Shown one piece after another: positions 4,015-47,368 of a stretch of DNA of 64,000 nucleotides. The stretch covers positions 9,052,001 to 9,116,000 of the forward strand of contig JBHGNT010000006.1 of NCBI GenBank assembly GCA_043228905.1, given 5' to 3'. The translations under genes and the position numbers were made by a program. The stretch comes from Azolla caroliniana (taxonomy: Eukaryota; Plantae; Polypodiophyta). Below the pieces are notes generated by a model, which saw only the letters and a program-made list of their open reading frames with translations, searched no databases and was not told where the DNA came from. Each line of letters starts with the position of its first letter. The stretch's first letter is position 1.

Positions 4015-4085
4015 GCATTGGTGGCCTAGGGGTAGAGTAGTACCTTGCCACGGTACAAACCCGGGTTCAAATCCCGGCCAATGCA
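4015..4085 (+). tRNA. trnG-GCC: tRNA-Gly (anticodon GCC), slightly atypical
   Basis: GCATTGG/CCAATGC acceptor stem, GTACC-TTGCCAC-GGTAC anticodon arm, CCGGG-TTCAAAT-CCCGG T arm, 71 nt. D-arm substitutions relative to the usual plant tRNA-Gly leave functionality uncertain. Confidence 0.85.
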
Positions 4086-4601: not shown

Positions 4602-5408
4602 ATGTCTAAACGAAAGGAACACAAGGATACACAAGACGAGGCTATAAGTAAGGAGGACTTTTTGGATATGTTTAACCGTTTAACAAAAATAGAGACGGAT
4701 ATGAAAAAATGGGTGAAAGACGCCGAAACCCACAAGAAAAAAGATAGAGAGGAAAAAGACACCCTCAAGGCCGAAATAGAAAAACTTAAAGAGGAAAACA
4801 CAAACCTCAAACAACAACTTAATGACATCAAGGTATCCCGAGAGGACGGTGAAATATCCTCCATAGAGGATATAAAAGATGAGATCAAAAAAGTTAAAGA
4901 GGAGGTTAAAAATAACATAGAGTTAGCAAAAACGGGTTGGGTAGATGTCGTTAAAAGAAACATTAAAAAAGAAATAAAGGATGAAAATATTGTTAATACC
5001 ACCCTCGAAGAGGAGAAAATGCGTCAGGCCCGACGCCTAAATGTGCGTGTCACTGGGCTCAAGGAAGGTGCATCCCCAGACGAGGATGCACAAACACTCG
5101 GGAAAATGTTAGGGTACACAACGACCCTACCTATCACCAAAGCTTGGAGGGCCGGACGCGACACAACTAGGAAGAGAGCCTTAGTTCTTCAATTTAAAGA
5201 CTTAGACTCTAGAATCACTTTCTTTAAGAAGAGACCAATTCTTCGAGGATTGGGTGGGGACCCTATCTATCTCGATGAAGACCTCACCAAGATGCAAATT
5301 GAGCATCGCAAGAGTTGTATGCCAAAGGTTATGCAAGCTCGCAAAGACGGGCATCGCGCCTTTTATCGAGATGGGCGAGTGATCATAAATGATCGCACTA
5401 TTAATTGA
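4602..5408 (+). CDS. LINE ORF1p (coiled-coil plus RRM/CTD-like, 268 aa)
   Basis: Intact ORF: charged coiled-coil N-half, then RRLNVRVTGLKE and IYLDEDLT motifs typical of LINE ORF1 C-terminal domains; ends 6 nt before ORF2. Confidence 0.8.
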   Translation: MSKRKEHKDTQDEAISKEDFLDMFNRLTKIETDMKKWVKDAETHKKKDREEKDTLKAEIEKLKEENTNLKQQLNDIKVSREDGEISSIEDIKDEIKKVKEEVKNNIELAKTGWVDVVKRNIKKEIKDENIVNTTLEEEKMRQARRLNVRVTGLKEGASPDEDAQTLGKMLGYTTTLPITKAWRAGRDTTRKRALVLQFKDLDSRITFFKKRPILRGLGGDPIYLDEDLTKMQIEHRKSCMPKVMQARKDGHRAFYRDGRVIINDRTIN

Positions 5409-5414
5409 CGGCGT

Positions 5415-8400
5415 GTGGCCCATGTGACAGAAAACACACTTAGGATGACCTTATGGAATTGTAACGGCGCACTCTGGACACACCCCGGCCGCCTAGAGGG
5501 GATATTAAAGGAATCAGATATAGTTTGCCTAGTAGAAACACACCAAAACCCAAATAGGGGACTCCCACGAGTCGAAGGATTTCGTTGGGAGTCGGCTTTT
5601 AGACAAACCTCACGTCGATTCACTACCAGGGGATCTGGAGGTGTCGCAATATTGTTTCGGAGGGAGCTACATAATAGGATAGAAATACTGAGCACAGACC
5701 CAGAAGCTCGTTTTATGTGGGTGAAAGTCTCCACAAGCAAGGACAAGGCAGTAATTTTCGCCATTTGTTACTTCCCCCCAAAAGGCTCTCGTTATAATCT
5801 GGCTGGCGAGGCGAGATTAGTTGATGACGGAGTGCCACATGGGCCTTCCCCATATGAACCTCTATCGGATGACATAATCCGATATTCTTCCCAAGGCGAA
5901 GTATTCCTTGTAGGAGACTTTAATGCGAGAACCCAATCCCGACAATGCACAATATTTCAAATGAATAGAAACCTAGAAATGGTAAATGTCGATCCTTCAG
6001 ACATAGACACCACACGTAGATCAAAGGATCAAGGTGCAGACGCCACGAGCTTTGGCCATCATTTGCTCGAACTCGGTAGTCGGCACCAGATGGTCATATA
6101 TAATGGTTTAGCCAAGTGGCCAGGTTCGGAAGAGCTCACATGTTTCCCACATGGAGGAGGGGAAAGCACAGTCGATTATCTAATAGGACGCCCTGAAGCC
6201 ACCCACATGATTAACTCCTTCCGAGTGGCCCCATGTCCTATTGGCGCGGACCATAGTTTCTACTTCGAGATAAAATGCGATATCTCTAACGTCACCAACT
6301 CTAGTCAACCACGCCATGACACCACAATACATTTCACACATGAGCTCTCTGACATATATGCTCGACATGTTCAAGCCCATCTCTCCTCCCTTGATCCCTC
6401 CCTACCTTTAGAGAGCCTTAATACGAAACTCACACACATCCTTCATTCTACAGCGGTTAGCAGCTTCCCATACACGAAACACTCCAATCAAGGTAAAGTA
6501 GGATCTATGCCACAAAATAGATGGTATGATGAGGATTGTAGGTGCTTACATCGACAACTTACAATATCGCAACTCAGTGGTAGTATTACCTCAGTACAAG
6601 CTCGTAAAGAAATGCGCAAGATGACACGTCGTAAGAGACGAGCATGGGAGGCATCCCAATATTGGGAACTCTACCACATGCTCATGAGTAACGATTGTGC
6701 CACTGCATGGAAGAGATTACGGGAACCAAGACCACAAACACCCATCGAAGATCCCGAAACTTGGCACACTTATACAGAGAGACTTTACCACATCCCAAAC
6801 CAACCACCCATTCCAATGCCTTCCACACCCCGACCTACTGTGGGGACACTCTTCACGACCTCTAGGGTCACGAAGGTCATAAAGAAATTACAACATAGGA
6901 AGTCCATGGACCACACAGGATTGCGAGCAGAACACATCATATACGCGAGAGAGTGCCTAGCTCCCTTACTAACTCTAATCTTCAATCGTGCCCTTGCAGA
7001 GGGTTTTCCATCACAATGGACCATGAACACAGTGGCCCCCATACATAAGGGGGGGGACCCCATGGACCCAAATACTTATAGGACCATTATGATAGGTCAT
7101 ACCCTTGCTAAATTATATGGTGCAGTAATGGAGGCAGAGCTTAGCGAGTATATGGAGACCTTAAATCTTCGTGCACCTGAACAGGCCGGCTTTAGACGAG
7201 CCTTCTCCACTATTGACCATATCTTCACACTTAGATGCTTAATTGACTAGACTAAGGCTCGCAAGAAGAAACTATATTGTTGTTTTGTGGACTTCCGCAA
7301 AGCCTTTGACACGGTCCCTAGAGAGCGGTTGTTTGATAGGCTTAAGAGCTTGAGGATACCAGATGACATGGTTTGGGCCATCTACGCACTATATGAACAA
7401 GTGTCCGGGTGTGTTCGGTGCCCAGGCGGCATATCCGATAGTTTCACTAGCACTATTGGTGTAAAACAAGGTTGCCCCTTATCTCCGACTCTTTTTGGGA
7501 TCTACATTGATGAGATCACAGATTTTATTGCTCGTAAGGGAGGCAATGGAGTAGTCCTTGGAGATACGCAGGTGCGTATCTTGCTCTATGCAGATGACAT
7601 AGTTTTGCTCTCTGAATCCGAACACGACCTACAAAGGCACCTTAATGCCTTAGATGATTTTTGCACACAACGAGGATTGGTAGTGAATCTAGGGAAAACT
7701 AAAGTCCTTATCTTCCACACGTCGGCCCAAGTTAGAGCTAAGTGTCACCTAACTATCTCCCATAGCCCAGTTGAGGTGGTTGGATCATATGTCTATCTCG
7801 GAGTCACTTTCAGTGCCCGCTCAGGTAAATTTTCGATGACACAAGCAGCGAAGGATAGACTTACAAGAGGACATGCATCCCTCTCACTCCTCGAGAGACA
7901 ATGCCACCAAGCATACTTCCAAGAGCCACGAACTAAAGGGTGGCTCTTTGACTCATTAGTGACTCCCTCTCTCATGTATGCATCAGCGGTTTGGGCCCCA
8001 GGACTACCATCTTTCATGTGGACGCAATTAGAGAGACCATTGGTGATGATGTTATCACGCCAACTCCGAAGCAAATCGTCGGTCCCACATGACATTATTA
8101 GGGCTGAGTTCACTCTACCCCCTATGTTAGTAGAAGCACTTTTTCAACTGGTAGTCTTTATACACAGGATACATAACCAACCACTTGATAGAATATCCCA
8201 CCAAGCCTTTAAGGCTTCTCGTGCATTGTATGAGTCCGGCTATACTAGCTCATGGTATGGCATGATGGTGAGTTGGCTTCTTGCCAACGGTCTAGACATT
8301 ACTAACCTCCCCCCCCTTAAGTACGACCACACGAATGATAACACTTTACTCTCTCATGAGGACCGTAATAAAGTAATACGCCAAGAAATATGGCAAATTT

Positions 8401-9155
8401 ATACCCGGTATAAATGGATCACCCCACTAGAGCCACTCCCATCTAAAATGTCGTACTATAAGGAACACTTTATGCACTTCTCTGAGTTAGGTTTTATCAC
8501 GCGCCCAAAATATCTAGATGTATTCTTACCACATGCACTAAGGGTTGCCATTGGTCAACTTAGAATATCATCTCACCAACTTGAGATTGAGAATGGACGT
8601 ACTAATGGAGTCCCTAGGGAGGAAAGGATATGTAGGTTATGCCACATAGAGATAGAGGATGAGTACCATTTTACATGCAAATGCCCCACCTATGCCGAGA
8701 TAAGGGCAAAATACCAAGACATACTTGGTTCCTCTCCCACCCTCCCTAAACTATTAGATACACTAGATATAAAGAAATTAGGTAGATACATCTTAGAATT
8801 GAAACACCACAGAGAGAACAAATTACAAAACGTTGATAATAATGTTGCTAATGTTTACCAACATATAACGAATGAAGTTTTTCAGGAACAGGGGGAGACA
8901 ATGAATGTCGACACACCTGCACCACTCAGACTTCTCCTTGATGACGCAGAAAATCAAAGAAGAACCAAACGCCCTCGGATGCCGGGTTTCAAAGCAACTC
9001 GACGAGATGTAGAAGCAATAAAGAAAATAAGGGAACGTGAACTACATCGCCTAGAAGCCATGGCTAGGGCACTCTATGCATCGGGACCATGGGTCACACC
9101 CACACCAAAAACTTTTGACCTCCCACTTCTTTTTGAGAGACTTGGGTGGAAATGA
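5415..9155 (+). pseudogene. LINE ORF2p (AP endonuclease + RT + Zn-finger-like) with one in-frame nonsense codon at 7248-7250
   Basis: APE motifs WNCNG, LVETH, GDFNAR, VDY, ADH; RT motifs QAGFR, DFRKAFD, GVKQGCPLSP, YADD. ORFs 5415-7250 and 7287-9155 are in the same frame, joined by *TKARKKKLYCCF. Confidence 0.9.
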
Positions 9156-11468: not shown

Positions 11469-12917
11469 ATGGCTGAGGAAACGGCAAAGGCCCAGGCAGC
11501 TACGACAGTGGGAGGATCCCGTGAATCACTTCCCGATTTTCAACCTGTTGCGGGGCTGATGGTTGAGCTTCAGCTATCAGAGCAAGAACAAGTACAAATG
11601 AGAGAAGAGATCTACCGTTTGCAACAAATTTCTTTAATTATACAAGTTTTAGGTCTTCGGCCAAATCGTCAAGAGTTGAGGCACTTGCTACAGGCTCGAT
11701 TACAGGCTGAAATTGGACGTATTGAAGATGTGCAATTTTTAGGAAGAGGCTATTATCATGTCGAGTTTCAAGACGAGGCATCTGTCCAGGTATTACTTGC
11801 AATGAAATTTGTTGATATAAGAGGAGCATGGGTTAAATTTCAGGAATGGAAACATGGTTTTGATCCTATGAGAGAGACCCAACATGATTTTTTAGTTATA
11901 ACTGCGAGTTTTCCGGGATTGCCTAAGGAATGTCATCATCTGTTGCATCAGTTAGGGGCTTTAATTGGAGTTGTATTAGATGCTTATATACATAATAAAG
12001 ATGGGAAAATATTTGGAATACCAACAGTTAAGTTATTATGTACTAGAGGAAAACCGTTGCCGGAATATGTGAAATTACCATGTTTGGAAATTGGGGGATG
12101 TGGAAAGAGACAAAAAATTTTATATGCCGGGTTACCAAATCAATGTTTTGTATGTAGAAGAATGGGACATTTAGCTAAGGAATGTTCCTTGTCAAGAAAG
12201 GAGCCAAGACATGTTGTAAATGATGTGCCACAAACAAGTGTTGGCGGCACTTGGGTTCAAGTTGCCAAAAGACACATGATAAAAAAAACAAGTCAAGATA
12301 AAATCAAATGGAAACCTAAGGATAATATATACAATTTGTTAACCAACGTAGAAGACGGACAAACACAAATGATTGAAGATGTAGGAAATATGGATGTACC
12401 TAGTAATAGGCGTCCTGGCAAGGAGATTGTGGATGGAATACAATCAAGGCCAGATGATCCTAAACTTGACATTCAAGTATATAATAAAGAACATCATGAA
12501 GGATGTAGTCATGAAATGGTTTTATATGATGAGAATGCTATTGTTCAGATTAGTGCATCAGAAACAATGGATGGACAAGAGATTGTAGGAGAATTACAAA
12601 ATAAAAATCAGATAGTTGACATTGGGTTCTTGCCTTCTTTTGAAGGGAGGTGGACAAGATCCATGTCCAAGAATTTGTCAAAGGATCATAATCCTTTCAT
12701 GAGGGATGCTAATGATTGGAGAACTTTCACGAAATCATTAGTTGAACATTTTCAAGGAAGTGATAGTAGGATTTCCTCTCAAAGAGTACATAAGCAGACT
12801 AATGCATTTAGTAAAGATCACATCTCTTTTAGAAGAATGATTAAGTCTCAAGACATGTCTCAAGAAGATAGGAATCGATGTTTGAAAGAAAGAAGATTAT
12901 TATCTAAATTTGTGTAA
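11469..12917 (+). CDS. L1 ORF1p (RRM/DUF4283-like region + CCHC zinc knuckle, 482 aa)
   Basis: Intact ORF with FLGRGYYHVEF RRM-like block and CFVCRRMGHLAKEC (CX2CX4HX4C). Confidence 0.88.
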   Translation: MAEETAKAQAATTVGGSRESLPDFQPVAGLMVELQLSEQEQVQMREEIYRLQQISLIIQVLGLRPNRQELRHLLQARLQAEIGRIEDVQFLGRGYYHVEFQDEASVQVLLAMKFVDIRGAWVKFQEWKHGFDPMRETQHDFLVITASFPGLPKECHHLLHQLGALIGVVLDAYIHNKDGKIFGIPTVKLLCTRGKPLPEYVKLPCLEIGGCGKRQKILYAGLPNQCFVCRRMGHLAKECSLSRKEPRHVVNDVPQTSVGGTWVQVAKRHMIKKTSQDKIKWKPKDNIYNLLTNVEDGQTQMIEDVGNMDVPSNRRPGKEIVDGIQSRPDDPKLDIQVYNKEHHEGCSHEMVLYDENAIVQISASETMDGQEIVGELQNKNQIVDIGFLPSFEGRWTRSMSKNLSKDHNPFMRDANDWRTFTKSLVEHFQGSDSRISSQRVHKQTNAFSKDHISFRRMIKSQDMSQEDRNRCLKERRLLSKFV

Positions 12918-12919
12918 AT

Positions 12920-15900
12920 ATGAAGATTATTTCTTGGAATGTTCAAGGTCTTGGGGGATCTTTATGTAAACAATATAAAAGGAGATTTCGGCAAGAGCTA
13001 CATAAATGTATAATTGGGCAAGTGGACATAGTGATGTTACAAGAACATCACCTAAATGAAAGGCGTACTAAAGTCTATGGTTCATTATTGCCTGGAAAAT
13101 GGGAAATGGTGTGGGTTCCAGCATATGGATCAACACAACTTAAAGGTGGATTATGTATGGCTATTCGGGATATATGGCAAGTAAAGATGTTGGAGGTAGG
13201 AAATTTGTTCTTGGGAAGAGCACAATATGTTATCATGGAATTTCATAATAAAAAGGTTGGCGTTTTGAATTTATATGCTCCTAATTCTTCTAGAGAACGA
13301 TTAAAGATGTGGATTGAATTGGATAGATCATTGCCAACTGTAGATCATTGGTGTATAGCAGGAGACTTTAATATGATTGAGGACCCTGAGGATAGGAGTG
13401 GTGAGGGTGGAGTAACAGTGCATGGTCTAGAATTATCTGCATGGGAAAGATTTACTATAAGTAGAAGGTTGGTGGATGTTTGGCATTTACCATCATTTGG
13501 AAAACTACATAATTCGTTACGGTTTTCTAGATCTGATAGAAGAGTAAACGGGGCAAACCTGTCAAGAATTGATAGGATTTATGTTGATGATTTATTTGCG
13601 GAGATAGGAGGGAGTGTTGGCATTTATCCAGGTACGACTTTCTCCGATCATGCCCCAGTTGTATTACAACTTAAGGTTGGGAAAAAACATAAGCAGCAAG
13701 GGAGAATAAGAATTCCACCAGAATTGTTTACAAAGTCTATAATTACTGAACAAGTTATGTATATATGGAGACAAACTTTATTGCAAATTGGAAATGTGGA
13801 AGACAATGTGACCTTGGCAATATCTCATATTAGTAGTTTTTTAATCTCTTGGGTACAGGGGAAAAAGGAAACATATACACAGAAAATTAATAGTATGCAT
13901 CGTGCCTTGGCATCGTTGCAACATTTTCAAGAAAGGGATCCATTGTGTGAATGGACAGCAAATGCTTTACATAATGCGAAATGGGAATTAAGAAAGATTG
14001 AGGACAACATTTTAAACTTTCAATATCAAGCTTCCGCTTCAAAATGGACACAAGTAGGTGACAAAGTAAACAAGATGTTTTTTTCCCAAGTTGCACCGAA
14101 ATGGTCGACAATAGGAATTAAACAATTAAGGAGGGAAGATGGCTCCTTAACAGTAGATGAGTCAGAAATTGTACAAATTGCTACTACGTACTATGCTAAA
14201 TTGTTGAATGCTGATGTGGCTACAGAATCTGTCCACATAAGTAGGAAACGGGTGTGGGATCAAATTAAGCCAAAAGTTACAAATGTAATGAAGGTTGCAT
14301 TAGTTAAGCCCTTTGACATTATGGAAATACATAATGCACTTAGAGCTTTAAGTCTTATGTCTTGTCCAGGGGAGGATGGAATTACTCCACATTTTTTCCT
14401 CAATTATTGGGAATATATTGGGGAAGATTTAACAAAAGCTTATCAAAGAATTTTTGACACTGGGTATATGCCTCGTAGTATGGCAGTTGGTTTGATTTAT
14501 TTAATACCTAAGGGTGAAGGTATATCAGATGATATTAGAAAATGGAGACCAATAACTTTGTTAAATACAATATCTTTGCAAAAACATTGGCTTTGAGAGT
14601 GCAACCTTTTTTGCATGATTTGATTCATATCACCCAAACAGGTTTTATTCAGGAAAGAAGTATACTGGATAATTTGTTCTTTTTTTGGGAAGCCATTGCC
14701 TTGGCTAGGAAGAAAAAAGAGAATTTAGTGATTTTGTTACTTGACTTTGAAAAAGCATATGATCGTGTTGATTGGGAATTCCTTCAGGGTACTCTTGTAA
14801 GATTGGGTTTTCCGGAGAAATGGGTGATAGGAGTGTCTTCTTTGTATAATTCAGCATGCAGTTCTGTTTTGGCTGGAGGGGTTAAAGGTGATGAGTTTCA
14901 AATTTCCCGAAGTGTAAGACAAGGCTGTCCACTTGCACCATATCTATTTCTGTTTTTTGCTGAAGCAATGAGTTTGTTTTTGACTGCTGAAGATGTTGGA
15001 TTAAAAGGAATAGCAATGCCCATTGATGGGACAAATGTGGTTGATGTAGAATTTGCTGATGACACAAGTTTGTATCTGGATTGTCACAATAATAATCTGC
15101 AGAAAATGTACACAGCAATGCAAACATTTTGTATAGCTGCAGGTGCATCAATTAATTGGAATAAATCAGTGGGTTTTTGGGTGTCGTCCGATTCCATAAC
15201 TCCACAATGGAGTCCTCATCCAGATTTCAGATGGGTTCCCGAGGGCACTTCAGTTAGATATTTGGGATGTCAAGTAGGGTTGAATATTTCTTCAGAAATT
15301 CAGGTTGCTTCTTTGTTATTGAAAATTAGGAAAAAACTTATGTTTTGGAGTAAAGCTAAACTATCATTTGCGGGTAGAGTGATAGTCGTTAATCATGTTT
15401 TGTTGTCTAGTCTCTGGTATATTATGTCATGTTGGAGTTTTTCGAGATCATGTATGGGACAATTGCAAAGATTGATTCGAAATTATTTGTGGTCTGGTAA
15501 TGATGGAAGCCATGCTAGGGCAAAAGTCTCTTGGTCCACAATTGTTAAGCCATTGGATCAAGGAGGATTAGGGATTGTGGATCCATTACAACAATCGAAA
15601 GCTTTAATGGCAAAATTGGTGATTCGAGGATTATTGCCAGGATCGGAACCTTGGAAACAATTGTTGTTTTATGAATTGCAAAGGTTTTGTCCCAAGACGG
15701 GTGGAGATTGGACGCCTAGTGCTAGATGGGCTTTTATGGAACATAATAAATTGGCTATTGCTACAAGTTGGGAAGATAGATTTGGTCGATGTGTTCTTAA
15801 AGCATGGAAAGATATTTCTCGTGATTTAGTTAAGACATTGCCAAAAACAGAATCTGAATTCTGTAGGCAACCGCTGATTTGGAATTCATGGTTGACTGAC

Positions 15901-17253
15901 CTAAGAGGACAAATGTTGGGAAAGCGTACTAAATGTGCATGGGCAGAATTAGATCGTGGGCCAGCACAGTCTATAGGTGCATGGATAACTTTTTTGTCTA
16001 AATCTATAGATCAACAAATGCTATTAATTAGTAATATAAGGGGTGGGAAGATAATGTATTCTGCGATCCAGAATGCCCTTGTTAATGTTCAAATGCAAAT
16101 TGGATATACTACACACAAGTGGATGGGTTTATTTACTCCATTGGATGTTTTAATTGGAGTGAAAGCCTATATTGGGGAACAAGAATGCATGACTTTTGAT
16201 GTACAGGATGATGGTAGGTTAATCTGTACATCTATGGAACATGATTTGTTTAGTTTTTGTTTACATAAAGAAGTGAGGGTGATTGCAAATGATGGATCAA
16301 ATTGGGTATTAGACCCGGATCCTCAAAAGGTGAATTGTTTGTGGAGGATTTGGATTTTGGAAAGGAGATCAATATCTACACTAACTTGGGATCCTGGAGA
16401 ACTGTATTGGAAGGTGAGGATGCAAGATAACATCAAATATGTGCCGTTTTTTCAGTATTCTGTGAGGATTGGTAGGAAAGTATTAGCTGCTAGATCATGG
16501 AAAGAATCAACTGCAAATATTGTTTGGAGACGAAATGAACTTTCTCCACAACATCTTAAACAATTTTGGAAATGGTTATGGGGTATAAAGATGAGTAGGA
16601 AAATTGTTGGTTTTCGATGGTTATTGGTTCATAATGCTATACCAGTTAATGGGTGGCGAAAAGGAAATGTAGACAAGATGTGTCCTTTTTGTACAGATGT
16701 AATAGAGACTGCTAAACATTGTTTGTGGAGTTGTGGTTTTGCTATGGATATATGGAAACAAATTATAAAATTTTTAATTCCAATATATCCTAGAGCAGTG
16801 TACACATGGGGTGCAGTATTATGGGCAGCGGTACATGATAAACCGATGGAATATGAACATGAGGAGGTTGCGGATGCTATTATGGTGAGGCATGGTATGA
16901 TGGAAAAAATTTTGATCCGTCCGAATCCACAAATACAAAATGATAAACCTCAAATATGGCAATTGGTAAGCAGTATTACAATTTGGTATATTTGGAAGGC
17001 TCGATGTTTGAAGGTATTTCAAAATATGACTGAAAGACCTGCTCAAATAATCTCCGGAATTTGGATAGAGATTGTACATAATCTTAGAGGGATTTTGGAT
17101 GGTATAAAAGGTAATACGCATCAAGCGGAGCTTAGGCGAGTGGAGTTTCATGCCATTTGGGACATAGGTATATTTTATAGACGGTATTTTGGTAAGGTGG
17201 AGTGGTTCTACTCAACACCAAAGTGTTTATTCAAGCCAATGGTTAGACTTTAG
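12920..17253 (+). pseudogene. L1 ORF2p (APE + RT + zf-RVT) with a single frameshift near 14570
   Basis: SWNVQG, LQEHH, GDFN, RIDR, SDH (APE); WRPITLLN, DFEKAYDRV, VRQGCPLAP, FADD (RT); CPFC..ETAKHCLWSC. Frame switch at LNTI/YNIFAK is consistent with a small deletion. Confidence 0.92.
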
Positions 17254-18542: not shown

Positions 18543-19932
18543 CTCATATGTTTTTTCAAGGATTAAGACCATCATATGCTCATTCGAATGTGGTACAAAT
18601 TAAGATAGGGGATGACATTGTTGTAGACCCAAACAAGGTTATTGAGTTATGTATTACTCATTTTAAGAATTTGATTAGGCTAGAGTTGATTATTAATGTG
18701 GATATGTTGAAAGCACGACAAGAGTTTTATAATGTAATTGGTTGTGTCATGAATACAAATATTTGTTAAGAACTGAATGTTAATTTTGAAGAAGCTGAGG
18801 TGGAAAAGGTATTATTACACCTTCCGAATGGTAAAAGCCTTGGTTGGGATGGTATTACAAATGAAGTTTTTAAGAAGTATGATGTCATGCTTAAGAGTCC
18901 ATTCACACAAATGTTTCAACAATGTTGGGATTCTGGTTTCATGCCCGAGACCTGGAAGGTGGGCTTAATCAAATTGATACAAAATCCCCGAAGTCATTTC
19001 ATTAATGGAGGCCTATTTCATTGATGGGAGGGTTGTACAAATTGTTTGCAAAGATATTATCCAACAGACTTAAGAAATTCTTACCTCAATTTATTCATCC
19101 ATCTCAATATAGTTTTATTGCAGGTAGAAATATATTGCATAATGTTTTGAAGGTTCAAATGGCTACTAATTATGGTCGTCATACCCATCAAGAAATGGTT
19201 ATGATGCAATTAGATTTGGAAAAAGCATATGATCATGTTAATTGGTCTTTTCTCTCAAGGGTGATGTATAATATAGGGTTTGGTCCTTGTATGTGTCGAC
19301 TTATCTTTTTGCTAGGGCAAAATGCAACCTCTCGTGTGATGCTTAATGGCGGAGTTACTCCGAAAGTGTTTCTTACTAGATTCGTGTGGCAAGGATGTCC
19401 ACTAAGCCCATTGTTATTTGCTATTGTTACACATCCTTTGTTAGTAATGTTGTCAAATCTTGCGGCTAGTGGTGATATTGTGGGTTTGCATCTTCCTTCT
19501 GGTGGACAACTGGTGGCACAAGCATTGGTTGACGATTCTTTTATGTATTTACAAGCCTCAAAAGAAAAACTTGAAAGGAGTATGCAAGTTTGGGATCGAT
19601 TTTCTTTGGCTTCAGGGTTGTATTTAAATTGGAGGAAGTCTCGCCTTATTTCTTGTACGGAGAGTGATTTGGAATGTTTGGGATGGCAAGGGTCAATGAT
19701 TACATGAGGATCAATTTATCGACATTTGGGTTATCCATTGAGTGTTGATGTTGCAAATGTTCAATTGATTGATTGGATTGGTAGTAAATTGAAGGACAAA
19801 TTTATGTATTGGACGCCTCAATTATGACCCTTTCATGTACGACTCAAAGTGGCACGATGTATCTTGATACCCTGTTAATTTATTTTTTACCATTACTACC
19901 TTGGACTAAGAAGGCATTACAAAACATGTTAC

Positions 19933-22617
19933 TGTCACAGACACACAAAGCGCGGACTAGGACGGAGCACAGATGATGGGGCTACGAGCAACGGATGAAC
20001 TTGGAGCTAGATGTGACGAGGCTAGGAACTCTAGATGTTGTGAGCGACATGAGGGCATGAAGAGAAAAATCAAGATCAAGGAGACAAAGATGAGGCGAAA
20101 CGAGAATACTAGATTGATGTGTCAATGATTGGCGTTGAATCCCTTGAAAGGGACCAAGAAGGTTATGAGTATTTATACTCTAAGTTGAAGTACATGCATT
20201 AAAATATTTTGAAGAATATTCTAGAACCTTCTAGAACATTGAAACTTTCTAGAAATTTCTAGATGTCTAGAGAGTATATCTAGATCATGTACATCTTATA
20301 CAATGATATGTAGATCAAATATATCTTATACAATGCTCGTATGAAAATGGTTGGGCATGATGTATTGTTGATGTGAGGTTGTAAGTTCAATCCTCACCAA
20401 CTATATATTTTATTTCATTGTATCGTGACATTATCCTCCCCTTTACGACCACCTTTTTGAAAGTGTAGTGTAGGGGTGAGCGGAGACTAGAACACCAACC
20501 GGCATGAGTGACCATGTGCGGTTCTCACCGGAGACTGGAACACCAATGGGCGTGAGTGACCATGTGCGGTCCTCATCGGGAAGTGGAACACCAATGGATG
20601 TGAGCGACCATGTGCGGTCCTCACCGAAGACAGGAACACCAACGGATGTGAGCTACCATGTACGGTCCTCACTAGGAACTAGAACTCCAATGAGCGTGAG
20701 TGACCACGTGCGGTCCTCACCGGAGACACGAACACCAACGGACATGAGTGACCATGTGCAGTCCTCACCGGGCACTGGAACACCAACAAGCATGAGAGAT
20801 CATGTACGGTCCTCACTGGGAACGCGAACACCAACGGGTGTGAGAGACCATGTACGATCCTCACCGGGAACTGGAACACCAACGGACGTGCGCGACCATG
20901 TGCGGTCCTCACTAGGAACTGGAACACCAACGGACGTGAGCGACCATGTACGGTCTTCACGGGGAATTGGAACACCAACGGGTGTGAGCAACCATGTACG
21001 GTCCTCACCGGAGACATGAACACCAATGGGCATGAGCGACCATGTGTGGTCCTCATCGGGAACTCGAACGTGAGCGACCATGTGCGGTCGTCATTGAAAA
21101 CACGAACATGCATGAGCGACCATGCCACCCTCACCGATAACTGGAACACAAACGGACGTGAGTGACCATGCAACCCTCACCGAGAACTAAACACGAACGA
21201 GCTTGAGCAACCATGCGGCCCTCACCGAGAACCAGGCCACAAACGGACGTGAGTGACCATGTGTGGCCCTCATTGGGAACTGGAATGCGAGTGACCATGT
21301 GCGGTCCTCATCGAAAACACGAACATCATGCAACCCTCACCGAGAACTGGAACACGAACAGACGTGAGCGACCATGCGGCCCTCATCGAGAACTGAACAC
21401 GAACGGGTGTGAGCGACCATGCGGCCCTCACCTAGAACTGGAACACGAACAAATGTGAGCGACCATGCAGTCCTCACCGAGAACTGGAACACAAACGGAC
21501 GTGAGAGACCATGTGGCCCTCACCAAGAACTGAATTGAACGGACGTGAGCGACCATGCGGCCCTCACCGAGAATTGAAACAACAACAGGCGAAGGAGTGC
21601 AAGTGAAGCAATCGACTTGACTTCTTCTATTATGAGAGGGTAAATAGTTGAGGTTGACCCAAGACACGACACAAACGGTAGCGCTAGCGAGAAACCCATG
21701 CAATTCCCACCAGGAAAGTGAGCGGGTGTGACCCCCACCAAAACTAGAAGGTGAGTGATCGAAATCGGTCCTCGCCAACAGAAAGTGGCACGAGACTTGA
21801 ACTATAACGAAAATGTAGTGCAAGTGAGCAATGATCCGATCCCACAAGGAAAGTGAGCGGTTGTGACCCCCATTGGAATTGGGAAGGTGAGTGATCGAAA
21901 GCACTCCTCACCAAAACCGTGATGCAAAATGATAACTAAAAATGATGACAAATAGTGTTGATGATGACGATGGTTGGGCGAAGAGGTGCTGAAAATGATG
22001 ACGTCAAAGACAAGGATGTTGATGATGGTAACTCCGGAAGCAAGGATGGTGATGATGGTAACTCTAGAAGCAAAGACGATGACGAAGACGAGTGGTGCTT
22101 CTAGTTGGAAGGGATTCAAACTGTCACGGACACACCAAGCGCGGACTAGGACGGAGCACAGATGATGGGGCTACGAGCGACGGATGAACTTGGAGCTAGA
22201 TGTGATGAGGCTGGGAACTTTAGATGTTGTGAGCGACATGAGGGCATGAAGACAGAAATCAAGATCAAGGAGACAAAGATGAGGCGAAACGAGAATACTA
22301 GATTGATGTGTCAATGACTGGCGTTGAATCCCTTGAAAGGGACCAAGAAGGTTACGAGTATTTATACTCTAAGTTGAAGTACATGCATTAGTATTTTGAA
22401 GGATATTCTAGACCCTTCTAGAACATTGGAACTTTCTAGAACTTTCTAGATGCCTAGAGAGTATACCTAGATCATGTACATCTTATACAATGATATGTAG
22501 ATCAAATATATCTTATACAATGCTCATATGAAGATGGTTGGGTATGATGTATTTTTGATGTGAGGTTGTAAGTTCAATCCTCACCAACTATATATTTTAT
22601 GTCATTGTATCGTGACA
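19933..22617 (-). mobile_element. Non-autonomous LTR retroelement (TRIM/LARD-like, chromovirus-related), no gag/pol
   Basis: Two LTRs TGTCAC...GTGACA (19933-20430, 22122-22617, roughly 95% identical by eye); 5-bp TSD GTTAC (19928-19932, 22618-22622); PPT AAAGGGGAGGATAA on the minus strand next to 20430; internal region is tandem repeats. Confidence 0.95.
20488..21575. repeat. ~48-bp tandem array (about 22 units, two sub-types)
   Basis: Unit approximately gaacaccaacggacgtgagcgaccatgtgcggtcctcaccgggaactg; translates as a 16-aa repeat SDHVRSSPGTGTPTDV; later units shift to aacacgaac/gcggccctcaccgagaac. Confidence 0.93.
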
Positions 22618-24021
22618 GTTACAACCTATTTGGTTCATGTTGTGGCAGAAGGGAGAAATGATGGGAGTTACATGGATTTCATGGGACCATTTGGCTACTC
22701 CCAAAAGGTTAGGTGTTGCAGCAATATTGGATTTGGAAATGCATTTGATGGCTCGTAGATTTGCATTATTATGAGATATATGTTAACAAGATCAACGATG
22801 GAGATATATGATGCAATATTTATTGAGCATGAAGGATTGTTGCACGGGAAAACAAAGATTCAAGCTTCCTGATGGTCATTACTCAATGGAAGTATTCCTC
22901 TAAAGATTCGACGTTCTATATGTGGACAACATTTGGTAAGATCATGGTAAGATGCATTATCTCTTTTTGAGTGGGGACCATCAAGCCCCATCAAGTGATC
23001 GAGAATCTTGTATTTCATTACAAAATGAATTGCTTGTTTCTTCTTGAGTGTTGTTTTGGCACGAGAAAGAGAAGTTGAGATCTCAATTCAATCGTTTATT
23101 TCGATTGGGGATTGTACATTTGGGAGATGTGGTTGATAATGAATCTCAAAGGTTGTCGGAATTTAAAGATGCCAAGAGATGATTATGTATCCCCCCAAAT
23201 TATGGATTTATTTGGGAGAAATTACATTGTATACAATTGTTGCAAGGATCTTTGCCATTGAAAACAAATGTTGCACCTTGGGTGGAACAAGATGGTACAA
23301 TGCTTGTTACAAGTCACTACAAATATATTGTATCATCACACAATGGCATCATTATCTTGGCTATCTCCTAAAGTAGAGAAGTTGTGGAATGTATTAAGTC
23401 AGATGCAAGGTAGTGGAAAATATTACAACGTGGTCGGCATTCCCATCTACCATTTCGTGCAAAGGTATTCATATGGAGAGCCATGATTGGTGGGCTCCCA
23501 TTAGGTTCGGCCTTAAAGAGATGAGGACTAGGGTCTGGCACTTGTTTCTTTTGCAATATTCCATTGGAGGATAGTACACATAGGTTCATTAAATGTCCTA
23601 TAGCGTGTACCATTTGCAAGTACTTATCGTACATTCAGCAAGTTTTAACCCGTTGTTGTTTGAGACCTTAACAATGGGTTTTTTCTCAATATGTTCAAAA
23701 TGGTTCAAATGATGAGATGGAGATATTGTTCCAATTTTTACGTTATTGGGGACTACAACACAATTGGAATATGTGTAATGCTTTCATGTTTGATAATAGA
23801 CATGGGGTAAAAGATAAAGAAGTTGAAAGGTATTCCCATGTGGAATTTTTGGATGTTAGAGCATGTGGGGATCATTTCCTCAAATGCAGATTCAGCTTTT
23901 TTAATGGCATTACATGACGTCCCTCTCCCTACATAGGTATATGATAGGTAGAGGACTCAAGAGACTAAGAAGTTTTATAACTAAGTGGATTCTACATACG
24001 ATTATTATAATTGTGTGCTTT

Positions 24022-41081: not shown

Positions 41082-43794
41082 TACCTGAGGTTGGGTCGAG
41101 TGATTGTGAGATAGATGAGGCTCTCGATCAGCTGTCGGTATTGAGTCGGCCCACACTCGTCTGTACCGGAGTCGGCAGTTTGCTTTAGATTCCGATCGAG
41201 ATGGGTTGCCACAGACTTACACTCAATCATCCCGAACTTGTACAACAAGTTAAGGATGTAGTGTCGTTGAGAGATCATAATGGCAGTTGGAGTCCGAATT
41301 ACCTAGATGCCAAGGAAGTAATGGAGCTCCTTCCAGTATATTTTCATCTCCAATGACTAGATCATCTACATATATGATAATGACAATCGGACTTCCAACA
41401 TCACTTCTTATGTAGAGGGAGTTGTCAGATTTTGACATTCTAAAGCCGATTTGATGAAGATATTGTGTTATCTTTGAATGCCAAGCACGTGGTGCTTGCT
41501 TAAGGCCGTAGAGTGGCTTCTTTAGTCGACAAACTGCTTTCGGATGGGTGCTCGATTCGAAGCCGGGTGGTTGTACCATGTACACCTCCTCTTCTAATTC
41601 GCCTTGAAGAAAGGCATTCTTGACATCCATTTGATGGAGGTGTCACCCTTTCGCCACTACAAGTGCAATCACGGTTCACACATTTGTCATCTTAACCACC
41701 GGGGCAAAGGTCTCTTCATAGTCGACTCCATGTGTTTGTGTGCATCCTTTCGCTAGGAGCCGTGCTTTGTAGCTATTGATGGAGCTGTCAGCATTATACT
41801 TCACTTTGTAAATCCACCTACAACCGATCGCCTTTTTGTGTGGTGAGTGGGGAACGAGATCCTATGTCTTGTTCTTGCATAGTGCTCGCATCTCCTCGTT
41901 CATTGCTTCAACCCATCGTGGATCCTTGGCTACTTCAGAAAAAATTTCCGGTTCACGAATTGTCGCCACCTTCATCCTAAAGGCATAGTGATATGCCATA
42001 TAGTCGTTGTATCTGAATCAACTAACTAGAACTTCTATCGGGTGGAGCGATAGAGTTTCTCATTTGCCAATGTAAGTCCTTTCTTAACTCTGAGTGACCT
42101 CAAAGAGGCATCGAATTCATCAAGTTCACTATCGAGTGAGTGAGCCGACTCATTGTTGTCGAATTGATTGTCTTCATATTCCGGCATTTTGGCCTTGCCT
42201 TTGTCCATCATCATACTTGGTTGAGATGTGCTCTGGTTGCTCAGGGGCTCTTGTGGCCCACTGAGCTTGGTCGTGATCGGACTTTCCTCAAACATATGCC
42301 TCAGTTGATCTTCGTCTTCTATCTAATAATCAGCAACGGTTTGGTTTGAACCAAACCGAACCGCGAAATGGTTTCAACAGTAAAAAACCGCGGTTTAACG
42401 GTTTTTTTTTTTAAAAAAAATTTTAATTTAAAAATTTGTTTTTAAACGATCTTTTCATTTTTACACCTTATTCTCACATTTTAGGAACATCTTAAAAATT
42501 CTAAATAATGAAATATTATAAATTTTAAAAAAATTAAAAATTTGACCTATGTTGAAAACCGAAACCGAACCACGAAAAACTGTGGTTTGTACGGTTTGAA
42601 AAATGTTTAACGGTTTGGTTTCACAGTTCAGTTCAGGTTAAAAAATTAAAACGGTTCGGTTCCAAACTGGTTCGGTTTGGACCCTCTCAAACCGAACCGA
42701 ACTATTGCCGATTGTTACTTCTATCTCTTGGTTGGCCAAGTTCGGGTCGACTGGAAATGATTCGGGAGGAGTCGGCTTCGATTCATACCATGATGCCGAT
42801 TCGTCAAAGACGACATCTCGATTTACACGAACCTCCGAGTAGAGGGGTTGAAGCACTTGTACCCCTTTTGCTCCAGTGAGTACCCTACGAGGATACACTT
42901 CTCCGACTTGGGATCTAGATTTTGCCGCTTTTTGTCGGGAATATGCACGTATGCGATTGAGCCGAATATCCTTACATGGGATAGGTCTGACTTCTTTCCA
43001 TAATACTTCTCGTGAGTAGTGACCTCGTGCACACCGGATGTTGTGCACTGGTTCATGAGGTAGATGGCGGTATTTGCAACTTCTACCCAATATGACTTGG
43101 GCATATGTTTCTCGTTCAACATGGCCCTTGCTACTTCGAGGATGTGCCGATTCTTGCGTTCAGCTACACCGTTCTATTGCAGTGTGTGTCAGCAAGTGAA
43201 TTCTCACCGAATTCCTTCTTGTTGAAGGTATGCCATGAACGCATCGAAGAAGTATTCCTTTCCTATGTTCGACCGAACACATTGTACATGGTGCCCAATT
43301 GTCTTTTCGACTTTGCTTTTGAATTTATGGAAGTGTGTAAACACTTTGCTCTTCATCCTCATGGGAAAGATCCATTTGTATCTAGAGAAGTCGTCGATGA
43401 AGGTAACATAGTACCAACATCCTCCGAATGTGGTCATCTGTACCGGTCCCCACACATTTGAGTGGCCTATGTCCAATAGGCCTTTGCTCACATTCCTCTC
43501 TTCTGAGAACAAGTGCCGATGTTGCTTGCCGAATTGGCATGCTCCACATACTCCATTTATTTCCTTTCCTTTAAATGTAGGGAGTCTAATGAATACTCCT
43601 TTTGATTGCATCCCCTTGAGCTTTTGGAGGTTGATATGGCTCATTCTTTTGTGCCATAGCTCTATGTCGGTGTCGGCTTTGAGGCCCTTTGCAAACATGG
43701 CCAATTTCACCTCGTTTGACTCGAGGATAAACATTCAAGCTTCCCTTCGACCCCGAGCTATGAGTCGGCCTTCCTTCTCGATGAAGCAACCACC
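41082..43794 (-). mobile_element. Ty1/copia element, internal part (GAG-pre-integrase, integrase, RT), decayed and 3'-truncated
   Basis: [70 protein letters not shown]; copia domain order; multiple stops and frameshifts. Confidence 0.92.
42324..42717. mobile_element. hAT-type MITE inserted in the copia element
   Basis: 8-bp TSD CTTCTATC (42316-42323, 42718-42725); imperfect TIR TAATAATCAGCAACGG / reverse complement TAACAATCGGCAATAG; many AACCG/CGGTT subterminal repeats; AT-rich core. Confidence 0.9.
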
Positions 43795-46700
43795 TGTCAG
43801 GAATAGTACTAAAGAGAGAGAGAATTAGTACTAGAAAAGAGAAGTACTATTAGTACTAAGAGGACGGGATTGCGTAAGATTCCCGAGAGAGGAAGAGAGA
43901 AGAGGAGAGAGAGAGAGATAGCGAGAATGAGAGAGAGAGAAAGATGATGACAACAGCTAATATATTATGTGAAAGATAAGTACAAAGTGGTTAAGAGGCT
44001 TAAGACTGGCGTTGAACCAATTTGGTTCAAAACAATACCTTGTGCCTCCTTTTATAGTGTTTTTAGGAATAATCCTGAAGCTTCTAGAATGTTCCGGAGA
44101 GATCTGGAATATACATCAATTTTCTATGATAAAGCATAATGAAAATAATATCCTACAAATTACAATTCATAGTCTAATGGTAAGAGCTCGACCCATGTAG
44201 CATAAGATCATGGGTTCGAGTCTTGCCATATCATGGCACTATCTCCCCCTTAAAGACGACGAGTAGAACGAGTTGGCGCTGATTGCGGACCGGGTTTGTC
44301 GAGATACTTTCGGTGGAAATCAGCAAGAAGATCTTGAGCATTGGCAACATGCTCGACGGGTTCCCAAGTACGTTCGCTCGGACTATAACCGAGCCAATCG
44401 ACCAAATGATAAAGTTTGTTGCGAACAAGTTTGGAATCGAGGATAGCAACAACTTCATACTCCGGGCCGGCGTCCAACTCCAGTGGGGGCGGTGGCAGTG
44501 TAACACGATCAGGTATGGTGTTTGCTTTATAAGGTTCAAGAAGAGAACAATGGAAAACCGGATGTATCTGAAGTTGCGAAGGGAGATCAAGGCAGAATGT
44601 GACATCATTAAACTTACCCGTAATACGGAAAGGACCGAGTCGTCGATAATCCAACTTGTCGCACGGTCGAGTAGTCTTGATGTGACGACGTAAGAGCCAT
44701 ACTCGATCTCCGATGGCAAAAGAGGAGGGAATCCGATGACGATCCGCATAAGTCTTCTGTGTGTGTTGAGCATGAAGAAGGTGAGTAGAGAGATCCATCT
44801 GGATCTTGCGTAGCCTCTCCAAATGATCCTCGGCACGAGGGTTGGTAGGTAGCTCCGGGGTGTCGATCACCGACCAGCAAGGATGAAAACCAGTATAAGC
44901 GAAAAATGGGGAGACCCGAGTCGAGGAGTGAATAACATTATTATACGCAAACTCCGCAAAGTGGAGAATCTCAACCCAATCGTCCTGTTGATAACTCAGG
45001 AAACACCGGAGATATTGTTCTAGTGTTTGGTTTGTTCGTTCCGCCTACCCATCGGTCTGAGGATGGTAGCCGGAGGAAAGGTTGCAAGAGACCTTGAGCA
45101 TCTTGAAGAGATGTTGCCAAAATTTGGAGATGAATTGAGGTCCTCGGTCACTGATGATACTGTCTGGGAGGCCGTGATGCCGAAATACCTCACGCATGAC
45201 GAGGGCGGCGGTTTCCTCGCTAGTGATGGCCTTAGTACACGGCACAAAATGTGTCATCTTCGTATATCGATCGACGATGGTTAAGATAGCATCGAACCCC
45301 TTCGAGACCGGCAAATTAGTGATAAAATCAAGACAAATAGATTGCCACGGCTTACTTGGAATCGGTAAGGGTTCCAACAAGCCATATGGATGGTGTCGTG
45401 ACATCTTTGCTCGACAACAAGCATCACACGTCCGAACGTAGTCGTCGACAAAACGGCGCATGTAGGGCCACCAAAAAGATCGTTGCACTAGATCCAATGT
45501 CTTAGTACTACCGAAATGTCCCGCCGTATGGGTGTCGTGACAATTCTAGACGGTTTGAAGGCGACAGGAGCAATCGGGGACATATACGCGCTTTTTAAAG
45601 AATAACAAACCATCATGATATTCGAATTGTTGGTAGTCAATACCTGGTTGTTGAGACTGAGAACAGGATGGCCGAGAAGTATTAATGTGCGCCAGGATGT
45701 CTTGAGCAAAACTATCCGTCTTCAAGTTTGCACGTATGTCATCGGTAATCCGTGAATCCATCAGGGTTTGAAAAATCCGCGTTGTGTGCAATCGTGTTGG
45801 TCCCAAGATTACTTGCTTTTGATTATCAAATGTTGGATCACCAGGATGAGGTGTAAGATATGAACGCCGTGATAGTGCATCTGCTTTTCCTTGCTGCTTC
45901 CCCGGTTGATATGTGATTTTGAAGTCGAAACGTGTGAGGAATTGAGCCCACCGAGCTTGCCGTCGGTTTAGTACACGAGTGTTCTGGAAATAAGCAAGAT
46001 TTTTATGATCACTATAGACAATGACCTGATGTGGAGAGCCCTCTAAGAAATGCCGCCATTGCACAAATGAATCCACGATGGCTACTAACTCCTTGTCATG
46101 TATTTCATAGTTGATTTCCGCGACATCGAATTTGCGCGAATGGAAAGCCACAGGATGTAACTCTTCTTTATCTCCTTGTTGAGAAAGGATGCTACCGAGG
46201 GCAAAATCTGATGCGTCGGCCTCCATGATGAATGGTTTGCTTGTATCCACATGAGCTAGAATCGGTGCTGATGTAAAGGATTTCTTAAGATGCCGAAAAG
46301 CCATATCTGCTTCATTGGACCAAAGAAATGCTTGTCCCTTCTTCGTAAGTTGTGTGAGAGGTAAAATAATCTTTGAGTAATCCTGTATAAACTTATGGTA
46401 GAAGTTAGCAAAACCTAGAAAACATTGTACATCTCGTATCGACCGTGGAATTTGCCACTCTAGTACAGTTTGGACTTTAGCTGGATCTATGGCGATGCCC
46501 TTTAAGGAGATGACGTAGCCTAGAAATTCCACTTGCTTGCAGTCAAAGCTACATTTTTCTAGCTTGGCATAAAGACCATTCTTGCGGAGTCGCTTTAGTA
46601 CTAATAGTACATGAGAATCGTGCTCTTCCTGGGTCTTCGAATAAATCAATAGATCATCCAGATAGATGATCAAACAGATATCCAAGAGGTCTTTGAATAT

Positions 46701-47368
46701 ATCATTTGCCATGTGTTGGAAGACTGCGGGTGCATTGGTTAGGCCGAATGGCATAACAGTATACTCGAAATACCCATACCGCGTGCGAAAGGCAGTCTTC
46801 CATTCATCTCCCGGTCGGATCCGCACGAGGTTATACGCTCCTCGTAGATCGAGTTTGGTAAAAACTTGGCACCATTAACTCGCTCCAAAAGACTTGATAT
46901 AAGAGGAATTGCATACCTATTCCGGATGGTGACCTTATTCAATCCGCGGTAATCAACGACGAGATGAAGTGAGCCATCTTTCTTCTTGACAAAGAAGATG
47001 GGTGCACCGGCCGGAGATTTCGAATGACGGATGAACCCGCTTGCCAAATTCTCCTCTATGTAGGCTCGAAGGACTTCTAACTTGGTGGGTGACAAGTTGT
47101 AAATTGGTCCCCATGGTGGCTCAGTTCCTGGTTGTAAATCGATGGGACAGTCATAGGGACGGTGATGAGGAAGGGTACCGGCGTTTACCTTGTCAAATAC
47201 ATTGGCATAAGGATGATATTTTGGCGGAAGTTGTACTGAGGATTCCTTCTTAATAGTGCTGGAAGGATGTACTGATCTTGCAAATAGGAACATTGTCTCC
47301 TTGTGTTCTTCTTCGCGTAATTGATGGAGTGAAATGGTCGAAACTCGGTGAGTAGATTCTTGGGGTTG
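43795..47368 (-). mobile_element. Ty3/gypsy chromovirus (Tcn1-like), 5'-truncated: RT-RNaseH-INT-chromodomain, PPT, 3' LTR 43795-44238
   Basis: VDYRGLNK, KTAFRTRYG, MPFGLTNAP, YLDD, DASDFALG, NYEIHDKEL, DRGPQF, HPQTDG, HPVFH; chromodomain YEVVAILD..YHLVDWLGY..TWEP; PPT AAGGGGGAGATAG adjacent to LTR TGCCA...TGACA. Confidence 0.93.

Follow-up and report, generated by a model that had tools for sequence, protein, structure and literature searches.

How does a retroelement that lacks a binding site for a transfer RNA (tRNA) prime the synthesis of its DNA? The question is raised by the minus strand of positions 19933-22617 in a window from Azolla caroliniana (Polypodiophyta), i.e. the whole stretch of 64,000 nucleotides (nt) that we analysed (contig JBHGNT010000006.1, positions 9,052,001 to 9,116,000), where a complete non-coding long terminal repeat (LTR) retrotransposon of 2,685 bp is present with both LTRs, a target-site duplication and a polypurine tract. 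Our analysis makes it highly probable that this element, an abundant LTR retrotransposon of the non-autonomous kind that inserted here long ago, uses self-priming of the Tf1 type.

The 5' LTR (22122-22617, 496 bp; this and all other features of the element are on the minus strand) is followed by GTTTGAATCCCTTCC, in which no TGG-type primer-binding site (PBS) is found, as the first-pass annotation had noted and direct reading bears out. Specifically, a GT spacer (22120-22121, read directly) separates the end of the LTR from the 11-nt PBS TTGAATCCCTT (22109-22119), and this sequence is complementary to an 11-mer in the element's own LTRs, AAGGGATTCAA, the match being exact both for the copy in the 5' LTR (22324-22334) and for that in the 3' LTR (20135-20145). 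The complementarity extends over exactly 11 nt, with the next base mismatched on either side. A TATAAATA box (22359-22366) precedes the 11-mer in the 5' LTR, with its first T 32 nt before the putative first transcribed base, and the spacing in the 3' LTR is equal (20177 to 20145); on re-reading, the positions first given for the PBS, the two 11-mers and the box, as well as the 32-nt spacing, are all correct. We take AAGGGATTCAA as the putative self-primer, that is, as the first 11 nt of R. It is directly followed by a conserved R core, CGCCAGTC (22316-22323), which represents invariant columns in an alignment of relatives (A1, described below) and in the RNAalifold consensus. In self-primed elements the PBS lies within 0-3 nt of U5, and here the offset is 2 nt with an exact 11-nt LTR complement. 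Since the 3' end of the partner falls where the minus-strand primer must sit, 2 nt from U5, we read the pairing as priming by the element's own RNA.

Could the match be a chance inverted repeat in a decayed element? Within the window, where no other copy of the element is present in the 64 kb, the sole evidence is a single copy with 5% LTR divergence. However, a complement of at least 11 nt to the first post-LTR bases (offsets 0-5) appeared anywhere in the LTR in only six of 20,000 dinucleotide shuffles of the LTR (P = 3e-4), and the number of matches expected in a 10-nt interval at the right place is about 1.6e-6. Moreover, independent copies and families retain the match and show covariation in it, as detailed below. 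A chance match, to which we assign practically no probability, is excluded.

Both LTRs are of the TG..CA type with a 7-bp terminal inverted repeat. The 5' LTR reads TGTCACG...CGTGACA and is 95% identical to the 3' LTR (19933-20430, 498 bp), which likewise begins with TGTCACG and ends with CGTGACA. Direct reading gives a GTAAC target-site duplication on either side of the element (upstream copy, 22618-22622; downstream copy, 19928-19932), and the polypurine tract, AAAGGGGAGGATAA (20431-20444), abuts the 3' LTR. The opposite orientation was ruled out: it is only on the minus strand that a purine tract adjoins an LTR, and the TATA box has the same direction. No credible Pfam family was detected among the open reading frames (ORFs) of the element, which are tandem-repeat artefacts. 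With LTRs, target-site duplication, PBS and polypurine tract all present and no gag/pol coding capacity, the element is a non-autonomous LTR retrotransposon.

Public DNA runs from the source species and a relative contain thousands of contigs that match the element at 85% or more. The loose ends of these contigs break precisely at 22122 and 22617, and past 22617 their consensus reads as the polypurine tract in reverse complement, which confirms the LTR borders. Contig depth has a 10- to 100-fold peak over 22278-22358, comprising the primer and the sequence directly after it, and this shows that the primer and the R core are common to many more LTR families than the element's U3. Except for two indels (about 3%) in the PBS, none of the 40 best-supported variant rows falls in either 11-mer, with neighbouring positions varying at 15-95%; this low variation in the 11-mers is suggestive only. 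We also scanned metagenome and viral contigs with 15-mers for the junction between LTR end and PBS. Most of the matches were due to chance: among the 168 junction matches (168 loci, referred to by L numbers), nine had a complement of at least 9 nt upstream and six are real relatives (L002, L011, L023, L046, L051 and L087), with no relative among the viral-contig matches. Two of the six, L002 and L011, are chromovirus junctions, and the other four are diverged non-coding copies (70-84% identity) with the same tandem repeats as the window element. The complementarity is kept in these copies, since both 11-mers are exact in L023, L046 and L051 while the flanks vary, and the single C>T change in the PBS of L087 still allows a G-U pair to form.

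If the pairing is important, changes on one side should be matched on the other, and such compensatory changes are present. Locus L046 contains a second non-coding element (1355-1538; subfamily B), which has the primer AAGGTGAACAA and the PBS TTGTTCACCTT. In R, in U5 and after the PBS, its homology to the window element is plain, but four adjacent primer bases and all four of their partners have changed. Subfamily B is also present in the source species (loose-end consensus at 22326), and its promoter-to-primer segment resembles that of family L184.

Coding relatives were found by protein searches with the reverse transcriptase (RT) of a chromovirus in the window, and subsequently with the gag found that way. 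In most of the fetched chromovirus contigs both gag, of about 320-395 aa, and pol, of about 1,100-1,210 aa, are intact, and several are from the same studies as the non-coding copies. Six families of these relatives, with seven pairs listed, carry further private primer/PBS pairs: ATTCCGGTTCAA/TTGAACCGGAAT in L002, L011, L170-L175 and L179; AGTTCGAGTCAA/TTGACTCGAACT in L176-L178; AATTCGAATCAA/TTGATTCGAATT in L180; AAGGAGATCAA/TTGATCTCCTT in L181-L183; CAAGGTGAACAA/TTGTTCACCTTG in L184-L186; and, in more distant families, GTATTAGCAA/TTGCTAATAC in L187-L189 and L191-L193 and ACTCTGGTTCAA/TTGAACCAGAGT in L194. Every chromovirus contig has the same layout, in which a TATA box, 32-33 nt, a C|A step, a 10-12-nt primer ending in CAA and the core are followed by the LTR end, ...ACA, then by a spacer of 2 nt (GT, in one case GA) and finally by a PBS exactly complementary to the primer. 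In nearly all related families, a C|A step 32-33 nt past the TATA box marks the start of the primer, the exception being the distant L187-L193 family, where a 10-nt complement 33 nt after the TATA box is preceded by T. The R core is CRCCAGT in the closer families and CACAAGT in two distant ones.

Alignment A1 comprises 15 relatives, 13 of which have GT and two GA as spacer, and its primer/PBS helix was scored against 500 shuffles. As many as 95.6% of the cells in the helix are paired and both sides have changed in nine of the 12 pairs. The covariation score is 0.671 compared to 0.172 +/- 0.031 in the shuffles, none of which (0/500) reaches the observed value, and when the register is slid the score collapses to 0.01-0.23. 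Without any hint, RNAalifold predicts the primer/PBS helix as the sole consensus structure, with an extension formed by two short pairings, one between RC of R and the GU of the spacer and the other between GUC and the GAC at the LTR end; this extension plausibly explains the conservation of the R core. Single-sequence folds likewise include the helix in the minimum-energy structure. The compensatory changes between PBS and LTR that the first-pass annotation had looked to are accordingly there, as the four-base switch in subfamily B, as the chromovirus pairs and as the double changes in A1, and on these comparative grounds the primer/PBS pairing is maintained by selection. Together they represent a natural covariation series of eight primer/PBS pairs, among them the pairs of two homologous non-coding subfamilies that differ by a block switch, and the support for the pairing is about as strong as comparative data allow.

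Covariation shows only that the pairing matters; it proves selected pairing, not priming. The helix might therefore be an RNA panhandle selected for some other role, such as packaging, dimerisation or translation control, with another primer used for the minus strand, and the single-sequence folds do extend it into R and U5, as for a structural leader element. We consider this improbable given where the helix is placed. In every family its 3' arm starts exactly 2 nt past the end of the LTR, which is the position where a minus-strand primer must sit to give correct LTR ends, and no alternative TGG... PBS is present at the priming position. In addition, Tf1 constitutes an experimentally proven precedent for the geometry (PMC4600332).

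Another way to account for the PBS is to assume that the primer used at TTGAATCCCTT comes from the host, as a tRNA, a tRNA half or another small RNA with ...GGGAUUCAA at its end, and that the match in the LTR is incidental. Certain copia lineages of plants do have half-tRNA primers (PMC6317226), and our search for tRNAs covered the window and the element itself. In the sister families, with the homologous non-coding subfamily B among them, the PBSs differ, however, and each is matched by the LTR of its own family at an equal distance from the TATA box, which excludes a shared host tRNA or tRNA-half primer. Moreover, no TGG follows the LTR, Rfam gave zero matches on the whole element, tRNA included, and the sole tRNA gene in the window, tRNA-Gly(GCC) at 4015-4085, is 18 kb away (the two were not compared base by base). 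We therefore judge priming by a host RNA to be very unlikely, even more so than the panhandle. That the element is coding-free, tRNA-independent and self-priming, as first proposed, is supported by the exact complement, the conserved copies and the covariation.

In the self-priming model, the A at 22334, which follows the TATA box by 32 nt, would be the first transcribed base, and the RNA would fold back so that its first 11 nt pair with the PBS, 2 nt past U5. Short pairings involving the R core would extend the fold: GC would pair with the spacer, GT, and GTC with the GAC at the end of the LTR. The RNase H of a helper would then cut after ...UUCAA and the freed 3'-OH would prime minus-strand DNA. 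Because the plus-strand copy of the PBS would be templated by the primer, a change in the primer would be copied into the PBS, and we infer that the families have private primer/PBS pairs because the PBS is re-copied in this way. The basis for this step is the inheritance of the PBS in retroviruses, together with a finding cited in PMC6317226, according to which the self-primer of Tf1 is reportedly not removed.

Which element might provide the helper functions? Mobilisation in trans by a chromovirus, as suggested by the first-pass annotation, is in agreement with the cis signals that the element and the chromoviruses have in common: the LTR termini TGTCA..GTGACA, the GT spacer, the polypurine tract, the R core CRCCAGTC and the TATA spacing. 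The polypurine tracts in chromovirus loci are near-identical to that of the element, e.g. AAGGGGAGGATAA in L181 and AAAGGAGGGGATAA in L001. From these signals, we suggest that the element descends from, and presumably is copied by, a self-priming chromodomain Ty3/gypsy lineage. BLAST of the element against the intact chromoviruses sampled revealed no extended DNA similarity, and hence no helper can be named.

In addition to the lack of a nameable helper, other points weigh against self-priming as outlined here. The start at 22334 is a prediction made purely from the TATA spacing and the C|A step. Among the public runs with the element none is an RNA run, and the runs consist of contigs, from which neither RNA starts nor RNA ends can be read. 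Both the point of RNase H cleavage, after CAA, and the mobilisation in trans are steps that we infer. The variant evidence refers to the best-supported 40 rows, with 93 further rows outside that view. Finally, with LTRs that are 95% identical (5% divergence) this copy is old; it may be dead and need not be active.

How does the element compare to known systems? Self-priming has been demonstrated for Tf1, where the geometry is proven, and the same geometry has been proposed for Tj1 (PMC4600332). Tf1 and Tf2 of Schizosaccharomyces pombe, like Tj1 of S. japonicus, are self-primed Ty3/gypsy chromoviruses whose PBS, located by the 5' LTR, is complementary to the 5' end of their own mRNA (over 11 nt in Tf1), as predicted for the present element. 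They too lack a tRNA PBS, their primer/PBS duplex is extended by neighbouring pairing and they have a chromodomain integrase. Priming and cleavage are experimental in Tf1, whereas they are predicted for the present element, which moreover encodes nothing. Its relatives differ from Tf1 in that their primers of 10-12 nt always end in CAA and are followed by the CRCCAGTC core, and in that many of them have a PBS-like arm in U3.

In plants, self-priming has been predicted for 12% of the LTR retrotransposons surveyed, namely the Tcn1 chromoviruses of mosses and club-mosses and the TAR copia elements (Neumann et al. 2019, PMC6317226), while other plant chromovirus groups are stated not to use it (Neumann et al., PMC6317226). 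The novelty implied at first was consequently overstated, and the element is a non-autonomous variant of a known priming mechanism; in the literature we found no description of a non-autonomous self-priming LTR element. The Tcn1 clade (REXdb) resembles our case in several respects, since its members are plant chromoviruses related to Tf1/sushi, lack a tRNA PBS, are predicted self-primers and have a group I chromodomain (PMC3350952). They are, however, autonomous and reported from mosses and club-mosses, while the present element is non-autonomous. For SM-Tcn1 of Selaginella, an earlier study found no self-priming signal (PMC2864245). The TAR lineage of Ty1/copia (Houba, Osr-1) likewise consists of plant LTR retrotransposons that are predicted self-primers (PMC6317226), but it belongs to another superfamily, the coding relatives that share the cis signals of the present element being Ty3/gypsy chromoviruses.

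With large retrotransposon derivatives (LARDs) and TRIMs (terminal-repeat retrotransposons in miniature) the element shares the order LTR, PBS, non-coding interior, polypurine tract and LTR, together with a target duplication and helper dependence. LARDs have a size of several kb. TRIMs are defined as being under 1 kb, with terminal repeats of 100-250 bp and a tRNA-complementary PBS (PMC6934838). The present element, with its 2,685 bp, LTRs of 496 and 498 bp and no tRNA PBS, is not a TRIM, and at 2.7 kb with 0.5-kb LTRs it falls outside the size classes of both TRIMs and LARDs; its interior is mostly made up of 46-48-bp tandem repeats.

Self-primed reverse transcription had so far been proven in fission yeast, with predictions for TAR copia and for the Tcn1 elements of mosses and club-mosses, and the present case extends it to a non-coding parasite that is very abundant in a non-seed plant. 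The invariant parts, i.e. the CAA end, the CRCCAGTC core, the GT spacer and the 32-nt TATA spacing, are probably those that are read by the RNase H, RT and integrase of the helper. Such elements will be overlooked or misinterpreted by annotation pipelines in which a tRNA PBS is obligatory.

The chromovirus in the window is truncated and its coding remnants, identified with Pfam, cover 44250-46826 on the minus strand. One ORF (45546-46826) encodes RT and RNase H, and another (44250-44870) encodes an integrase SH3 domain and a chromodomain, the translation of which has the aromatic-cage residues. The Pfam Chromo match (1e-11) covers the full profile and EYEV...YHLVDWLGY keeps three aromatic positions; by its sequence the chromodomain is of the classical group I type (criteria in PMC3350952). 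Among named matches to the RT, those from Rhizopus are 55-56% identical, those from fish 49%, from Endocarpon 48% and from Tanacetum, an angiosperm, 41-45%, which, at the level of sequence identity, fits an affinity to Tcn1/Tf1-sushi. The 3' LTR (43795-44238, minus strand) has a TATAAAAG box and the palindrome TTGAACCAA-A-TTGGTTCAA, followed by the CGCCAGTC core. The 5' LTR and the PBS are absent from the window, and none of the fetched loci is a copy of this family with its PBS, which we predict to be TTGAACCAATTT.

Many of the contigs with intact chromoviruses (L169-L174, L177-L178 and L184-L188) are about 4.9-5.4 kb long and circularly permuted (pol-LTR-gag) with 30- to 130-fold coverage, a pattern of high-copy, recently active elements that have been collapsed by the assembler.

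In many of the related LTRs, the segment from the TATA box to the putative start contains a PBS-like arm, which is complementary to the primer over 7-9 nt. In the window element this U3 arm, TTGGTCCCTT (22337-22346), is an imperfect copy resembling the PBS, located past the TATA box and ahead of the primer, and the hairpin that it might form with the primer, with 6 nt of Watson-Crick pairing, is weak (P about 0.06). Shuffle P values for the arm are 0.0002-0.007 in families F2, F5 and F6, in the non-coding subfamily B and in the window chromovirus, and the arm is absent in F3 and F4. Where present, it changes together with the primer and the PBS; examples are 22337-22346 and 44023-44030 in the window, L046:1334-1345, L184:5793-5802 and L181:6106-6117. 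The hairpin would be formed only in the 3' U3-R copy of the RNA, where it would mask the downstream primer from mis-pairing or cleavage. We tentatively suggest, as a possibility that is more doubtful than the self-priming itself, that a private primer/PBS code in each family together with the U3-arm hairpin forms a previously undescribed regulatory layer of self-primed retroelements. If true, non-coding parasites would be freed both from host tRNAs and from the primer choice of the helper.

All these LTRs also have a motif such as GATTCGAACTTGTGACC or GGATTGAACTTACAACC, 15-50 nt from the 5' end of the LTR. It is located at 22571-22590 (minus strand, U3) and 44203-44222 in the window, at 4060-4085 in L170, and in the U3 starts of L178 and L180. 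The motif resembles the antisense of a tRNA T-arm (B-box-like) and is situated away from the priming position.

In rare public contigs, the PBS edge at 22119 is joined to the primer edge at 22324 with 15 other letters between them, and one joint switches strands (22068/22339). The break points of these rearrangements are precisely at the two 11-mers and could be due to recombination between the inverted 11-mers or to aberrant reverse transcription.

As regards the interior of the element, non-coding tandem arrays with 48-bp and 46-bp units occupy 20481-21588 (minus strand), i.e. about 1.1 kb, and each unit of 46-48 bp has an internal inverted repeat, GTGAGCGACC...GGTCCTCAC. The arrays are kept in the diverged copies L023, L046 and L051 and may therefore matter, e.g. 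for packaging.

A protein search with the NBR1 ORF gave a best match at 87%, the next named ones being at about 40%. Other mobile elements are also present in the window. The truncated chromovirus is nested among Ty1/copia remnants (43400-43794 and 47797-48561), with a copia gag-integrase-like sequence directly after its 3' LTR and an RVT_2 ORF on the plus strand. Two plant-type long interspersed nuclear elements (LINEs) on the plus strand, at 4602-9155 and 11469-17253, each have an endonuclease ORF and an RT ORF, and the second has an extra ORF1 with DUF4283 and a zinc knuckle. Finally, a LINE RT fragment (19021-19707, plus strand) lies directly beside the insertion site of the self-priming element.

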